Shown piece after piece: positions 16,460-22,284 of a stretch of 64,000 nt of DNA. Numbering within the stretch: position 1 is the first letter of the stretch; each line of letters starts with the position of its first letter. The notes below the pieces were generated by a model, which was not told the DNA's origin, made no database searches, and was given only the letters and a program-made list of their open reading frames with translations. The stretch covers positions 843,342 to 907,341 of the forward strand of contig JAHDYR010000005.1 of assembly GCA_019828565.1 (NCBI GenBank), given 5' to 3'. This DNA comes from Carpediemonas membranifera BICM (lineage: Eukaryota; Protista; Fornicata). A program made the translations under genes and the position numbers.

Positions 16460-16713
16460 GTACTGAGGTCTCGAGGGTGATACGCCCAGCTTCCTTTGAT
16501 GAGAGGGATCTCAACTCGAGATATGAGTCGCCACGACTCCACGCCACCGCTGCTCGCATGTGTCCACTAGCTGTCCTGGATAAGCTGCATTGGCCGTATG
16601 TTTGGCGCCATGGCAACTTTGGTATGACCCAACCCGATATTGCTGAACACGGGATCTGCTGCCTTATTGCTAACAGAACCGGGTTATTCACGAATTTACT
16701 CGATTTACCGCTC

Positions 16714-19700
16714 TCAGCTGATATATAGGCTGCTTGCAGCCACCACACCGACCCTGACGAGCCGGCCGGCCATCTCAAACGCACGGGCCAGCTGGACGTT
16801 GCCGAGGACATGGGCCGCGTTCTTCGCCTCCTTGCATGAGTCAGCCAGCCGGCACAGATGCTTCACCACGGCACCGGCGTCCTCGTCGGTCTCGCTGAGG
16901 GCCTCGTTCAGGGTGGCACCCATCGCCCAGCGATACGCCACATGGACGAGACCGGCGTTGACCGAGTCGGCAGAGTCGGTCGGTGTCGCGTGCTTGGTCT
17001 CGAGCTGGCTTACCTGGCCGGCAACTGTGGTGACGATGTCAACAGCATCCCGGACGGAGTGTGACACGGAATCGGGCCGGAACTCGTTGAAGCGGTCGTA
17101 CAGCAGCGCAGAGAGCGTGGCGGCGATCTCAGGCGGGGCGAGCCTGTCGAAGACGCCGGCCGTCATCAGCTCGACGGCGACCACCGGGGAGATGGACCCG
17201 AACTCGCAGGCCGCCCGCCCCTTGGGTGTGACTGCGTGGCGACTGTCGACGTACCCAAGATCACGCAGCACCGCGAGCCTCGACTCCAGCGCGGGCAGGG
17301 TCTGCAGGTTGTCGTCGGACAACACAGCCCGGAGCTCGCCCAGTCGAGCCGCGTCCGTCAGACGGTCCCTGTGTCGCGTGTAGCAGGCCGTGAAGTCGGG
17401 GCAACCGAACGTCGGGCTGGCCTGGAGCTCGCGCTCGATTGTCTCAAGCTCAGAAACGGCCAGGCCCCAGTCGAGGTCGCGGATCTTGTGGGATGTCAGC
17501 GGGACGACCGTAAGATCGTCGAGGAGTGGTGCCAGGGCTGTCCGAGCAGCGGTGGTCGTGGCACGCGATATCTCGTACGGGGGCACCTCGTTGGTCGGCA
17601 CTCTCTTGTTGGTCAGGCCCCTGACCGCTGGGGCTGGGACCATCCGGACGGCGGCCTTACACTCCGCCAGATTCCTGCTGTCGACCTGGGGCATGAAGAG
17701 GTTGGCGAACCCTGTCAGTGTCTGCCCGGCATCGTCGGGGGGGCGGATTGTGACACAGGGCACGTCATCGCCCAGGCTGTCGGGCTTTGCGAGGACAAGG
17801 GCGACGCAGCGCGTGTCGTCCGTGTCTGCGACGACGATGACCGCCCCCCTGTTGACACCCTCGAGCTCGGCCAGCCTGGGCCCGATACTGTCCGCGAGGA
17901 TGACCTCAGCGGCCTCCCGGGCCTGTGCGAACTGACTCATGGCCGAGTCGTCGCCCCTGCCGCACACGGGGCAGGCGGGGGCGGCCTCGATGACGGCAAG
18001 CTCGGCCTCAAGCTCGTCGCGCTCCTTCTCGAGCGTGCCCCTGTCGCGCATGGTGCGGAACTCCCCGAACGACCGTTTGAGGATGTCCCGGACGGCCCAG
18101 CCCTGTGCACGAAGCAGGTTTAGGATAGACGAGTACGGCAGCCGGAACTGGGACTCCAGGCGCTGCGGGGCCCCGCTGAGGAGGTGCTGCAGACGGGCCA
18201 TGCCGATGTCGCGGTCACGGGCTTCCAACGTGATGAACACGTGCCCGACGGCGTCGAGTCCCCGTCTACCTGCCCGGCCGGCCATCTGGATGAACTCTGC
18301 CGGGTGGAGGTCCCTGGCCCCCGACCCGTCGTGCTTGATGATGGAGTTGAAGACGACAGTGCGGGCGGGCATATTGACTCCCATGGCGAAGGTCTCGGTC
18401 GCCAACAGCACCTTAATGAGGCCCTCGCTGAACAGCATCTCCACCGCCTCCTTCAAGAAGGGCAGCATCCCGGCGTGGTGGATGCCGATGCCGCGGCACA
18501 GCAGGTCCTCGAGGTTGGCGGCCTGGGGTATCGCCCGGTCTCTCCCGTGGACCCCCGCCAGGAGCTGCCCGATCCTCGCCTGGATATGATCTGATTCAGT
18601 GACGGTGGTGAATCGGATCGACCTCAGATCCGCGGCGATTTGCTCACACTTCCGTCGGCTGAAGCTGAACACGATAGCAGGCAGGTAGTGCTGGTCCCGG
18701 AGCTTCTCCATGAGGCCGGTCCACCGCACCATGTCGTTCACAGGCGCACCGGACGCCAGCAGCTTCTCCCTCTGCTTGAACGCGGCGTTGGCCTTGGAAT
18801 AGACCGCCGTGTCGAACTTGCCGTTGCCCCCGACAACGGTGAAGATCTCCCCACAGTACAGGCTGTACTCGAGGGGCACCTGGCGCTTGATCGTGTTCAC
18901 TAGGTACACGGGCCGGTCCCTTGTCCGACCGACCCACTCGCCGAACTCCATCGCGTTGGGGACTGTCGCAGAGAGTAGGACGAGGCGGACGGTGGGCGGC
19001 AGGAGCACGATGAGCTCCTCCCAGACGACACCGCGGGCCGCGTCGTTGAGGTAGTGGCATTCATCGAAGATGACCCACTCCACGTCCTTGATGAGCGTAG
19101 ACCCCTTGTACAGCAGGGACCGCAAGACCTCAGTCGTCATCACGGTCAGCGAGGCATCAGGTTTGAAAGTCGTGTCACCGGTGAGGATGCCGACGTCCTT
19201 AAATGTCTTCTTAAACTCTCTAAACTTCTGGTTCGAGAGGCTCTTGATCGGAGCCGTGTATATAGCCTTACCGCGGTGTCTCAGAGCCAGCGCGATGGCG
19301 TACTCCGCGACGACCGTGTTGTGGGTGACGGTCAGATCGCCCAGCAGGAACCGTCGGTTGCCGGAGAGTTCGAATCCGAAGTAGTCGCCGAACCCCGTCG
19401 GCGTGACAGTGAACGCGTACGTGGCACGGGCAGGATCGGAGTTGGCCGCCTGGTCGGATAGCGCCTCGGTGCGGAGGAAGGGCACAATCACTGCAGAGCC
19501 CGCCCTGAGGGCCACGGCGCCGGATCTCATGCGGACAGAGATACAGAGCGACCGGCAGATGCGGGTGAAGGTGTCGAGGACGGCGGGGTCGGCCACAGCG
19601 ACCGTGAGGCTGCCCGCCGCGTCCACGGCCCCGGCGACCATGGCCGAGCGGTGTTGCGGGGACTGCCAGGCGTCGGACACGGACAGCTGTGTGGCGTGGG

Positions 19701-22284
19701 GCAGGCCGCGGCCTGTGTGGTAGGCGTCATCGAGGGTCATGGTCGGGGGATACACCGCAGGGAGGGTGCCCGCCCGCCGCATGCGGACAGCGAGGGGCGC
19801 GACGTTGCGGCAGACGGCGTCGAGCTCTCTAGCGGGCACGATGAACTCGGGCCGGTGCCGGGCGATGACGTCCCTCGCATCATCGACACCCACGGTCATT
19901 GTGACGGCGTGGGGCTTCTCCGGGGTGGTCGTGACGGCGACCATGCCGTCCTCGACCCGCTCGACCTTGGGACTGATCGCGATGACACAGAGATGGTCAC
20001 CGTTGCAGTTACCGGTGAGGATGGCGCGGGATGCCGAGGCGACGACACCGGCAGCGTCCTTATGCACTCGCCGGACCCACACAAAGCCCGACGGCATCGT
20101 GAAGCACCACGTGCGGCCGTGGAAGTCCACCTGTGTGATATCGCCGCGGCCCTTATCCACTGTGGGGGCCAGGGCATCGGGGCGGGTGTCGACGGAGACC
20201 GAGCCCCCAGGACCGACCAGAGGGGAGAGGCCGGCCATCAGGCACAGGCGGACAAGGTCGTCACGGAAGCGGGTGGATGATGTCTGGATGCGGTTGGCCC
20301 CACCGCTGGCGAGCACAAGGCCTGCGATGAGGCAGCGGAGGTGTGCCGCTCGGAGCTGCCACGCCCACGAGGGCACGGCGGCCGGCTGCTCGTGGACGAA
20401 GAAGGCGTCCCACTGGCCGTGGCGGACGGAGACCAGCGAGCCCTCGATGCGGCATTCTGCCAGTCCAAGTTGGGCCGCACAGCCCCGCACGGGGCCCCGG
20501 GCCGCGTCATGTGCGGTGAATGTAACACAGAGCTGGCTGGTCCCGTCGGGCTGAGCGGTGTGCTCCACCGAGCCGCCGTGGAGCCACATGCCGAAAAGCA
20601 CAAGGAAGGCGTTGACCTCGTCCTCCGTGCCGAGACCCAGCATGCTCTTGAGTCTGCTAATGACAGCGTGTGCAGCCTCTGGGTCGACTCGCGCCCCAGC
20701 TGAGGCATTCGCCTTCTGGCGGATGCAGTGATAAGTGTCATCATCAACGATGGTCGAGGCGGATACCTTTGTGAAGCCCTCATCTGCCTGTTCACCACCA
20801 TGTTGGACGAAGAGCGTGTGGTCCCGGGTGCACGCGAGGTCCACACCCGTGTCCCCCGCAGTCATCGCGACCAGCTGGACGTGGGCCTCGGGGTTCTCGA
20901 CGAGGGCACGGGGGGTCTCGAACACGAGCTCCCGCGTCTCCTGGTCGTATCCAGCAACGAGTACCGCCTCCCCGCTGCCTACAAGGCCCTTGTACGCGTC
21001 CAGATCGACGAACCCGCGGTCGGTCAGGATCTCGTGGTCCTCGGGCACACATGCCCAGTGGCCGTCCCCGTTGAGCTCCTTGATGCTGAACATGTCCATC
21101 CGACCCGTGGCCACACCGGTCACCGTCCTCGCAGTGCCGTCGTCGCCCATGACGGACTCCCCGTTGACGACGTCCTGGACCATCCGCACGGACCCGTCGG
21201 CCATGGTCACGGGGGTGTTGAGCCCCAGACACTTGCCTGAGCTGGTGTGGGCAGAGACTAGCACGTTCTCGCCCTGCTCCAGGCGCAGCACGGCTCTCTT
21301 CTGGAAGGCGTCAAGTTCAAAGGGGTATGTGATCGCAGGGTCAGGGACGCGGACGTCGTAGTCATCCAGGGGTGTGTTGTCTGCGACGACGAACTGTGAC
21401 ACGGGCCGGGTGATGCGGGGGATGACGAGCTTCTCCTCGAATACCCCCTCCAGTTCCGTCACCGGGCGGTCCTCGGCACCGAACAGGGCCTCAGCGACCT
21501 GTTCGTCGGTGGGATCTGGGCCATCGCTCTCAAACTCGGATCCCCAGTCCAGTGTGGCTGGATCAAAGAGCTGCACGTCGTCGAGGCCGTCATTGAGATC
21601 GAGGCCATACTTCGGCAGCTTACCGGCCATGAGCTGGTCAAAGGCGGCGGATTCTGTCTTGGCAGGGACATTCGCGTCATGCTGGACATCAGAGTCCGGG
21701 CAGCTGATCTGCTTGTTAAGGAGGAAGCCCTTCTTGAACACTCGGTACGGCATGGTTTGGTCTGCGCCATCGCGCCGCATAATGCCATCAGGATTGGTAT
21801 TAGTATGCTCCGGATCAGGGTTGTACCGCAAATTGTCGGCGCCCAAGAAGTCCACGACGGACAGGCTCTCGAGCACGTCTTTGGCGGTTGGAACGGGTGC
21901 ATCCGGGATCTCTGTCTCGGTACCACGGAACATGGGATCGTCAAGCAGCGTTTCGAGATTCAACTCCCTCTTCAGAACCCAGTCAATGAGTTCCATCAGC
22001 TTGCTCGTCGTAACAAATGAACGCATCAAACAGCAGATGATCGTTGATAGCATGCGACTGTGTGTGCATGATGTGCTGCACTGCTGTACGATCATCACCA
22101 CTATTGAGTCTGAGGTTGGCAACGTCTCCGCGCACTGAACGCCAGTATCTTCCTCATGCAGCAAAGCTCTATTCCCAGAAAAAACTTTATTCCCGCCTAT
22201 CCGCGGAAGCAGAGCAGACAATGAAAACGCCCTATCCGTCGAGCTTGTAGTGCTGCTCGACATACTCAGCCGCCGTCCGGACAC
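16714..22284 (-). CDS. SKI2: Ski2-like DExH RNA helicase precursor containing two nested inteins (true start probably downstream, e.g. ATG 21996)
   Basis: YPFELDAFQK, AHTSSGK|TVVAEYAI after removing the insert, YTAPIKSLSNQK, VIFDECHY, LLSAT, ATETFAMGVNMPA, QMAGRAGRRG and a DSHCT-like end (AASSLYI). ORF minus the 638-aa insert is 1218 aa, a normal Ski2 size. Confidence 0.95.
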   Translation of the reverse strand: MSGRRLSMSSSTTSSTDRAFSLSALLPRIGGNKVFSGNRALLHEEDTGVQCAETLPTSDSIVVMIVQQCSTSCTHSRMLSTIICCLMRSFVTTSKLMELIDWVLKRELNLETLLDDPMFRGTETEIPDAPVPTAKDVLESLSVVDFLGADNLRYNPDPEHTNTNPDGIMRRDGADQTMPYRVFKKGFLLNKQISCPDSDVQHDANVPAKTESAAFDQLMAGKLPKYGLDLNDGLDDVQLFDPATLDWGSEFESDGPDPTDEQVAEALFGAEDRPVTELEGVFEEKLVIPRITRPVSQFVVADNTPLDDYDVRVPDPAITYPFELDAFQKRAVLRLEQGENVLVSAHTSSGKCLGLNTPVTMADGSVRMVQDVVNGESVMGDDGTARTVTGVATGRMDMFSIKELNGDGHWACVPEDHEILTDRGFVDLDAYKGLVGSGEAVLVAGYDQETRELVFETPRALVENPEAHVQLVAMTAGDTGVDLACTRDHTLFVQHGGEQADEGFTKVSASTIVDDDTYHCIRQKANASAGARVDPEAAHAVISRLKSMLGLGTEDEVNAFLVLFGMWLHGGSVEHTAQPDGTSQLCVTFTAHDAARGPVRGCAAQLGLAECRIEGSLVSVRHGQWDAFFVHEQPAAVPSWAWQLRAAHLRCLIAGLVLASGGANRIQTSSTRFRDDLVRLCLMAGLSPLVGPGGSVSVDTRPDALAPTVDKGRGDITQVDFHGRTWCFTMPSGFVWVRRVHKDAAGVVASASRAILTGNCNGDHLCVIAISPKVERVEDGMVAVTTTPEKPHAVTMTVGVDDARDVIARHRPEFIVPARELDAVCRNVAPLAVRMRRAGTLPAVYPPTMTLDDAYHTGRGLPHATQLSVSDAWQSPQHRSAMVAGAVDAAGSLTVAVADPAVLDTFTRICRSLCISVRMRSGAVALRAGSAVIVPFLRTEALSDQAANSDPARATYAFTVTPTGFGDYFGFELSGNRRFLLGDLTVTHNTVVAEYAIALALRHRGKAIYTAPIKSLSNQKFREFKKTFKDVGILTGDTTFKPDASLTVMTTEVLRSLLYKGSTLIKDVEWVIFDECHYLNDAARGVVWEELIVLLPPTVRLVLLSATVPNAMEFGEWVGRTRDRPVYLVNTIKRQVPLEYSLYCGEIFTVVGGNGKFDTAVYSKANAAFKQREKLLASGAPVNDMVRWTGLMEKLRDQHYLPAIVFSFSRRKCEQIAADLRSIRFTTVTESDHIQARIGQLLAGVHGRDRAIPQAANLEDLLCRGIGIHHAGMLPFLKEAVEMLFSEGLIKVLLATETFAMGVNMPARTVVFNSIIKHDGSGARDLHPAEFIQMAGRAGRRGLDAVGHVFITLEARDRDIGMARLQHLLSGAPQRLESQFRLPYSSILNLLRAQGWAVRDILKRSFGEFRTMRDRGTLEKERDELEAELAVIEAAPACPVCGRGDDSAMSQFAQAREAAEVILADSIGPRLAELEGVNRGAVIVVADTDDTRCVALVLAKPDSLGDDVPCVTIRPPDDAGQTLTGFANLFMPQVDSRNLAECKAAVRMVPAPAVRGLTNKRVPTNEVPPYEISRATTTAARTALAPLLDDLTVVPLTSHKIRDLDWGLAVSELETIERELQASPTFGCPDFTACYTRHRDRLTDAARLGELRAVLSDDNLQTLPALESRLAVLRDLGYVDSRHAVTPKGRAACEFGSISPVVAVELMTAGVFDRLAPPEIAATLSALLYDRFNEFRPDSVSHSVRDAVDIVTTVAGQVSQLETKHATPTDSADSVNAGLVHVAYRWAMGATLNEALSETDEDAGAVVKHLCRLADSCKEAKNAAHVLGNVQLARAFEMAGRLVRVGVVAASSLYIS
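19318..21231 (-). mobile_element. Outer intein in the Ski2 Walker A motif (ORF aa 352-989; 290 aa once the inner intein is removed)
   Basis: Block A CLGLNTPVTMADGS...VMGDDGTARTV; block B reconstituted as HWA-CNGDHLCVI; blocks F/G GDYFGFELSGNRRFLLGDLTVTHN followed by Thr+1; LAGLIDADG relic AMVAGAVDAAGS. Confidence 0.95.
20008..21051 (-). mobile_element. Inner intein nested within block B of the outer intein (ORF aa 412-759, 348 aa)
   Basis: Block A CVPEDHEILTDRGF; block B DLACTRDHTLFV (TxxH, His at intein position 78); LAGLIDADG relics FLVLFGMWLHGGS and LIAGLVLASGG; blocks F/G GRTWCFTMPSGFVWVRR...ILTGN followed by Cys+1. Confidence 0.92.

Follow-up and report, generated by a model that had tools for sequence, protein, structure and literature searches.

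How an intein comes to stand inside the splicing domain of another intein, and what the host protein would then need in order to mature, are the questions raised by a Ski2 (SKIV2L-type) RNA helicase gene of the fornicate Carpediemonas membranifera BICM. The gene was analysed within a stretch of 64,000 nucleotides (assembly GCA_019828565.1, contig JAHDYR010000005.1, forward-strand positions 843,342 to 907,341), referred to below as the window, and positions are counted from its first letter unless another contig is named. The Walker A motif of the helicase is interrupted by an insert in which an earlier note, made from the letters alone, had read one intein nested in another. This nested architecture is almost certainly real: an intein of 348 residues interrupts the splicing domain of an intein of 290 residues, which itself interrupts the helicase. 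Our preferred reading, to which we assign a probability of about 0.7, is that the gene encodes a Ski2 precursor from which both inteins are spliced, the inner one and then the outer one, to give active Ski2.

The Ski2 gene and its insert

The Ski2 frame is open without interruption over 5.5 kb (Table 1), and a Pfam search of it returned DEAD (split), Helicase_C, the MTR4-like stalk and DSHCT. The region after the insert was 38–39% identical to Ski2/SKIV2L from animals, fungi and amoebae, the best relative (39% identity) being free of inteins. In the public gene model P0171 (1770 residues), translation starts at 22026 and the entire insert is retained as coding. Within the 24.2-Mb genome the closest paralogue of this Ski2 is only 43% identical, and is therefore a different member of the family; the genome holds no spare intein-free copy.

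The insert comprises 638 codons (21231 to 19318 on the minus strand) between the GK and the T of Walker A, begins with CLGLNTPVTMADGS and ends with VTHN, and is followed by a Thr that is both the first residue of the C-extein and the +1 residue of the outer intein. When the insert is taken out, AHTSSGK is joined to TVVAEYAIAL, which is the Walker A region of the Ski2 orthologues; these are unbroken at the same position (AHTSAGK/TVVAEYAIAL, where the slash, here and in the motifs below, marks the insertion point), so that the restoration of the host site proposed in the earlier note is confirmed. Direct reading of the sequence likewise returned every coordinate, both insert lengths (638 and 348) and all motifs given there. 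Class 1 splicing residues are present in two complete sets, in the nested order A1-[A2..G2]-B1..G1.

Table 1. Positions of the Ski2 frame, the parts of the two inteins and the related paralogue.
Feature	Position	Strand	Description
Ski2 (SKIV2L-type) RNA helicase frame	16714-22284	minus	1856 codons counted from the first GTG
N-extein	21232-22284	minus	ends ..LVSAHTSSGK, Walker A through Lys
Outer intein, N-terminal 60 residues	21052-21231	minus	block A, Cys1, CLGLNTPVTMADGS ... GDGHWA
Inner intein, 348 residues	20008-21051	minus	Cys1, TRDH, LAGLIDADG-fold domain, WCFTMPSGF (block F), end ..ILTGN
Inner block B, T75-R-D-H78	20818-20829	minus	T in 43/44 and H in 44/44 family members
Inner LAGLIDADG-like motif 1 (FGMWLHGGSV)	20566-20595	minus	Gly at the catalytic Asp position; Asp in 11/44
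Inner LAGLIDADG-like motif 2 (IAGLVLASGGA)	20296-20328	minus	Ser at the catalytic Asp position; Asp in 12/44
Inner blocks F/G (GRTWCFTMPSGFVWVRR ... ASRAILTGN)	20008-20118	minus	W315, C316, P320, R327, R328, A340, S341, G347, N348 kept
Outer intein, C-terminal 230 residues	19318-20007	minus	block B, half-deleted LAGLIDADG, blocks F/G, end GDLTVTHN
Outer block B, C-N-G-D-H	19993-20007	minus	Cys doubles as the +1 residue of the inner intein
92-nt tract	19597-19688	minus	around outer MVAGAVDAAGS; 100% identical to the paralogue at contig 15, 280268-280359
Outer blocks F/G (GDYFGFELSGNRRFLLGDLTVTHN)	19318-19389	minus	agree with the family majority GDYYGFELDGNRRFLLGDFTVTHN
C-extein	16717-19317	minus	begins TVVAEYAIALAL; remainder of the helicase core, stalk, DSHCT
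Free-standing outer-intein paralogue	L001:1327-2493; contig 15 (G000) 279661-280650 for the ATG-started P0009	plus	

The outer intein

The outer element is, by its motifs and its relatives, a VMA/PI-SceI-like P-loop intein of 290 residues in two pieces. Its 60-residue piece matched the Pfam profile Hom_end_hint at profile positions 1-54 (E 1.1e-12; 48.9 bits, cut-off 32.1), and the final 35 residues of the intein matched the end of the same profile weakly. A full phmmer scan over 1.84 billion representatives, with the whole insert as query, gave 4481 relatives. Those of the outer parts were inteins at GK/T or GK/S of Walker A in many unrelated ATPases, with the pattern GK/C...THN/T recurring at P-loops in dozens of relatives, and with the consensus CLGxxTPVxMxDGS ... 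[VC]NxxHILSL ... GDYYGFExDGNxRFLLGDFTVTHN. The profile of this family spanned the whole of PI-SceI (positions 1-454, E 4.7e-46) and matched the Cryptococcus Prp8 intein at an E value of about 1e-26.

The window copy retains Cys1, N62-G-D-H65 of block B, the motifs of blocks F and G, the terminal His-Asn (..VTHN/T) and the Thr at +1. The first LAGLIDADG half-domain of its endonuclease is deleted, and MVAGAVDAAGS is the sole remnant; the outer homing endonuclease is, from these residues, decayed.

An empty site for the inner intein

The best match of the whole insert was P0009 (330 residues, 67% identity), a protein encoded in the same genome (contig 15, locus L001), which covers insert residues 1-60 and 409-638 only and is unbroken at the insertion point (..GDGIWA/CSGDHLCVL..). 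At the junction, the DNA of the paralogue reads tgggca/tgcagcggtgacca and that of the window tgggca/[1044 nt]/tgcaacggtgacca; in protein, the inner element begins with CVPEDHEILTDRGF after ..GHWA of the outer intein and ends with ILTGN, followed by CNGDHLCVI. The Pfam match on P0009 runs past block B (profile positions 1-75), and that on the window copy stops at position 54. Judged by this comparison, P0009 is a natural empty site for the inner intein. Removal of the inner element restores a block B of the kind found in the paralogue (IWA/CSGDHLCVL) and in the family ([VC]NxxH), as had been proposed.

Across 43 members of the outer family, block A is separated from block B by 58-66 residues, mostly 59, and since this spacing is nearly fixed, a domain of 348 residues is foreign to the segment. 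The residue that follows the inner element is the outer block B Cys, so that its use as the +1 residue, as the earlier note had it, stands; its description there as conserved does not, as Cys occupies this position in 16 of the 43 members, with mostly Val otherwise, and is semi-conserved.

The outer intein was assessed through its pieces, through the uninterrupted paralogue P0009 and through a two-chain structure prediction in which the 60-residue and 230-residue pieces were given as separate chains. The docking of the pieces reached an interaction prediction score from aligned errors (ipSAE) of 0.88, against 0.00 for the best control, with a predicted local distance difference test (pLDDT) of at least 88 for the partner and at least 98% of the contacts recurring from run to run; of 78 solved complexes 51 came up to that mark, as did 2 of 108 mismatched pairs. 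On the C-terminal piece, the interface comprised residues 1-8 (block B) and 197-228 (blocks F/G). The two halves are thus predicted to dock into one Hint fold, a result that would speak to likeness to that fold and not to activity. An AlphaFold2 prediction of the entire 638-residue insert from its single sequence gave a pLDDT of 34. A mixed MAFFT alignment of the whole insert was dropped, as the outer rows were placed on the inner region and, with the outer rows split, the inner rows were misplaced.

Together, the homology of the parts to their families with exact boundaries, the empty site in P0009, the model of the inner intein, the full-length match of the outer-family profile to PI-SceI, the predicted docking of the outer halves and the contigs described below support the nested order. 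Among the best 150 of the 1.84 billion representatives, no other nested case (an inner-family match between outer-family parts) was found.

The inner intein and its family

The relatives of the inner element were full-length, 32–43% identical to the window copy and of a different family from the outer intein. At least 79 full-length members were found at dozens of host sites, including the kinase activation loop (/CGTPxY), the kinase hinge (Y/C..G.L), PP1-type phosphatases (SAPNY/CGE), the phosphatase HC motif, RPB2 (PH/CIPSRM), a TBC RabGAP and one site of the Kickxella Prp8. Many of these sites are catalytic motifs of kinases and phosphatases, and the motifs colonised in kinases, phosphatases, RPB2 and Prp8 contain Cys. 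Members start with C[VLF]PEDH[EQ][ILV]LT and end with ..ASRP..TGN, followed by Cys or, less often, Ser or Thr. Because the inner element matches at least 79 inteins from end to end, with the same first and last residues, its assignment is far beyond chance. In its own genome the family is present as a single copy.

Searches of the inner element against Pfam and NCBIfam gave sub-threshold matches only, and Pfam had no match for the members of the family, for which a name or a Pfam model was looked for and none was found. The sole match of the inner-family profile in the PDB was the NrdJ-1 intein (E 0.0017). An alignment of 44 family sequences (A4) served as the basis of the residue counts and of an AlphaFold2 model, which had a pLDDT of 96 and a predicted template modelling score (pTM) of 0.92. 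Foldseek matched this model at probability 1.00 to PI-PkoII, the Tli and Pho VMA inteins, PI-PfuI and PI-SceI, with the middle domain resembling I-DmoI and the ends resembling a DnaX mini-intein. As modelled, the inner element (residues 412-759 of the frame) is a Hint fold with a LAGLIDADG-fold domain. The earlier note had expected both a Hint fold and profile matches for these residues; the fold was found by AlphaFold2 and Foldseek, and the Pfam and NCBIfam matches stayed below threshold. Its further description of the inner intein as a parasite of a parasite is supported by the family homology, by the empty site in the same genome and by the Hint and LAGLIDADG domains of the model.

All 12 invariant and all 15 nearly invariant positions of the family are retained in the window copy (C1, L9, T10, T75, H78, W315, C316, P320, R327, R328, A340, S341, G347 and others). 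Cys1 is invariant (44/44), and the terminal Asn348 is kept at a position that is Asn in 38 of the 44 members and Gln in five. A Gly before the terminal residue is the norm of the family (42/44), and hence a family trait and not a private defect. The inner homing endonuclease is, by its residues, decayed: the fold is present and the acidic residues are replaced (Table 1). Neither the inner nor the outer intein has the two LAGLIDADG motifs with acidic residues by which an active homing endonuclease was recognised.

In the family at large, an invariant Trp-Cys pair stands in block F alongside the invariant Cys1, and most members are without the LAGLIDADG acidic residues.

Contiguity and coding status

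Logan contigs of a public run, which may be the assembly's own reads, span 16708-19626 and 19659-21969 with 0 differences, 0 indels and 0 joints, and thereby bridge all four intein junctions, as contiguity of the insert requires. The sole break of the unitig graph is at the 92-nt tract, at least 279 nt from any junction. The ends of the contigs (~16708 and ~21969) lie near the ends of the gene, the contigs amount to ~10 Mb in total, and their depth differs 4- to 7-fold from that at the paralogue flanks; these features are a hint, no more, that the contigs derive from RNA.

The inner element ends in gca/tgt and aac/tgc, not in GT..AG, and taking out its 1044 nt keeps the reading frame. With these boundaries, and with the whole element homologous to coding sequence, the inner element is, as far as its letters tell, not an RNA intron, in agreement with the earlier note. 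At third codon positions the G+C content was 0.79 in the inner intein, within the range of the host, 0.86-0.92 in the outer intein and 0.73-0.84 in the exteins; on this count, neither intein has the look of a newcomer from DNA with another base composition.

Proposed order of splicing and its alternatives

We propose that the inner intein entered the outer one at the DNA level, later than the outer one had entered Ski2, between Ala60 and the block B Cys (CNGDH). In the precursor, the inner intein would first follow the standard class 1 route: its Cys1 would attack the Ala-Cys bond to form a thioester, the acyl group would be handed on to the outer block B Cys as the +1 residue, and Asn348 would then cyclise, restoring ..HWA-CNGDH... 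The repaired outer intein would then splice through its Cys1, Asn290 and the +1 Thr, leaving the Walker A loop ..SSGK-TVVAEY... Both inteins very probably splice. We lean towards a dependence of outer splicing on prior inner splicing, which the earlier note had likewise held as probable, because the inner intein was inserted four residues ahead of the catalytic His of block B, in a segment of near-fixed length. For the stricter form of this dependence, an obligatorily sequential cascade in which the outer intein is silent until the inner one has repaired its block B, the chances appear even.

As both homing endonucleases are decayed, the nested pair would now be fixed, and it would be retained solely since its splicing is needed. 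Were the host no longer in need of inner splicing, intact splicing residues beside a decayed endonuclease would not be expected; such a need is indicated here, since the splicing residues are intact despite the decayed endonuclease and the genome holds no other copy from which re-homing could occur.

Several points weigh against this proposal. That both inteins splice is an inference. The penultimate residue of the inner intein, Gly347, is non-canonical, class 1 inteins commonly having His there. A pass in the docking can stem from the model's memory of solved inteins. A collection of 5.8 billion proteins contained no Ski2 orthologue above 39% identity in which conservation of the nested arrangement could be seen. 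The contigs of the runs X1 and X2 are identical, and the two probably represent a single data set, perhaps that from which this assembly was made, and so do not count as independent support; the kind of run is a guess, and an RNA origin is uncertain. Ski2 is non-essential in yeast, and selection on the gene could therefore be weak. The order of splicing, finally, may not be fixed: the outer intein might fold and splice around the inner one, since its halves dock as separate chains in the prediction and a Hint domain has its N and C termini near one another.

From this last point follows the alternative that survives best, in which the order is irrelevant, the inner intein is a domain insertion tolerated like a homing-endonuclease domain, and the outer intein alone releases a composite of 638 residues. 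Besides the predicted assembly of the separate outer pieces and the adjacency of the Hint termini, it is favoured by the model of the inner intein as a complete Hint fold and by an inner Hint-to-endonuclease conservation ratio of 0.75, ordinary for the family. We consider it unlikely, however, given the position of the insertion four residues ahead of the catalytic His of block B, within a stretch that is near-constant in length among 43 relatives, and given that inner splicing residues of no use should have decayed as the endonuclease did, whereas all are kept.

Far less probable still is a dead end, in which one or both inteins do not splice, this Ski2 copy is decaying or non-functional, and related helicases might cover for it. 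The genome does encode other Ski2-family helicases, Ski2 is dispensable in yeast, the inner intein has its penultimate Gly and both endonucleases are decayed. Against these stand the uninterrupted 5.5-kb frame with all helicase domains recognisable, the retention of all splicing residues in both inteins, the nearest paralogue at 43% identity, another member of the family rather than a duplicate in reserve, and the normality of Gly-Asn in a family that occupies essential motifs of kinases, PP1 and RPB2.

An artefact, either an assembly chimera or an inner element removed as an RNA intron, is barely credible: the stretch is contained only in runs of no recorded type that may have supplied the assembly itself, and the unitig graph is broken within the outer intein by the 92-nt tract that a second locus shares, but the contigs cross all four junctions free of mismatches and joints at a distance from that break, the element lacks intron boundaries and leaves the frame intact on removal, its entire length is homologous to intein proteins, and the public gene model treats it as coding.

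Origin of the inner intein and other inteins of the genome

In a quick tree, the inner intein fell in a well-supported clade of 18 members, on a long branch of its own; the clade is made up of inteins from metagenomic eukaryotes rich in G+C, in which they occupy sites in kinases and phosphatases. P0012 (site VH/CSAGIG) was nearest to it in the tree, with the exact sister not settled. The best single match was P0010, at the kinase site MPY/CNGVSL, which has C-N-G at +1 to +3 in common with the window site; on the 3' side the two sites are alike in 9 of 10 nucleotides, and both read tgcaacgg. Microhomology-guided ectopic homing, which has been discussed for Anaeramoeba (PMC10710043), was considered and set aside as a weak lead, as the tree does not single out P0010 and the 5' sides are unlike.

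Within the outer intein, the 92-nt tract shared with the paralogue is flanked by sequence that is 67-71% identical between the two copies. The tract was found independently of a pairwise alignment with the paralogue in which the two pieces of outer DNA had been placed end to end, and coincides with the unitig break and with higher depth in the Logan data. It is most simply explained by recent gene conversion over a patch that surrounds the LAGLIDADG motif still present.

The paralogue itself has ~34-92 non-helicase residues before Cys1 (..TPVAR/C) and four residues (STPE) after its His-Asn, and is without a recognisable host protein. Its block B reads S-G-D-H, and its endonuclease is half-deleted like that of the Ski2 copy. 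In the Logan contigs, the flanks of P0009 are covered 4-7 times as deeply as the Ski2 locus.

For a eukaryotic genome, this one has an unusually large number of P-loop inteins, with at least ten further outer-type loci on contigs 4, 8, 13, 14, 17, 39, 63 and 67 and elsewhere on contig 6. Among the relatives found in the scan, P0033, P0048, P0071, P0148 and P0074 carry pairs of P-loop inteins that abut directly (..THN/CLGKDTPV..), so that the +1 residue of the upstream intein is Cys1 of the next; these pairs, in A+T-rich, viral-looking proteins, are a side-by-side counterpart of nesting. In P0034, P0037, P0117, P0079 and P0058, two inteins lie three residues apart in one Walker A loop (G/C...HN/TGK/C...HN/T).

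The kinase P0039 (1185 residues, from a JGI metagenome) carries an outer-type intein in its catalytic loop (HRDLK/../TSNLL) and, before the activation loop, a second intein with the end motifs of the inner family (start /CFDAADHQLLTN, end ..IQGN/), which had no score in the phmmer search with the inner query. As P0039 carries both types, the outer and inner families co-occur in other organisms. P0164/P0168, the Prp8 of Kickxella alabastrina (~4700 residues), is about twice the normal length and contains three outer-type starts and one inner-type intein.

Relation to known systems

Twintrons are group I, II or III introns nested in introns and spliced in sequence. The nested inteins are likewise a self-splicing mobile element in the functional core of another, for which removal of the inner before the outer is expected; twintrons act on RNA, whereas here removal would be from protein, and the likeness is one of analogy only. 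That inteins carry endonuclease domains nested within them, and that several may occur in one protein, is known. KOG0947, which we take to be the Ski2 group, is among the orthologous groups of viral helicases in which inteins occur (see below).

The outer intein has the same block A, B, F and G motifs and overall profile as PI-SceI, the yeast VMA1 intein, and stands at GK/T of Walker A like the inteins that home to the P-loops of ATPases. It differs from both in that its endonuclease lacks the first LAGLIDADG half and in that a second intein splits it ahead of block B. The inner intein is a full-length member of its family (C[VLF]PEDH..LT ... WC[FV]TMP.G ... ASRP..TGN/C) with the invariant residues kept, and differs from the other members in that its host is another intein and not a cellular protein.

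P-loop inteins, eukaryotic nuclear inteins and multiple inteins per protein were known already (PMC5784728, PMC10710043, PMC6195587, PMC6805012). P-loop inteins are reported to home to the P-loops of non-homologous proteins in Anaeramoeba (PMC10710043), inteins have been described in viral helicases of several orthologous groups including KOG0947 (PMC5784728), the DnaB of M. smegmatis carries several inteins (PMC6195587), and Prp8 has up to seven intein sites (PMC6805012). In such proteins, as here, more than one intein must splice for maturation; there, however, the inteins stand side by side with their Hint folds intact, whereas in this Ski2 the inner intein breaks the Hint fold of the outer. 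A full-text search of one literature collection returned no natural intein inside an intein, an absence that is not proof of absence, and none is described in the eukaryotic surveys PMC5784728 and PMC10710043 or in a 2025 preprint on non-canonical architectures (10.1101/2025.01.02.630785). An intein that interrupts the splicing domain of another intein thus appears to be new, no earlier report having been found.

Implications

The family of the inner intein is a large set of eukaryotic nuclear inteins that Pfam models miss. If the nested pair in Ski2 splices, it would provide protein engineers with a natural pair from two intein families for ordered two-step splicing. Were the sequential cascade to hold, two different Cys-dependent reactions in series would gate the activity of Ski2, and the locus would stand as the first equivalent of a twintron in protein, offering a splicing switch of two steps ready for use. 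For inteins as mobile elements, splicing of the pair would mean that the catalytic motif of one intein can serve as the homing site and supply the +1 nucleophile for another, that protein-splicing elements can parasitise each other, and that the dependence of a host can preserve the splicing chemistry of an intein at one remove.

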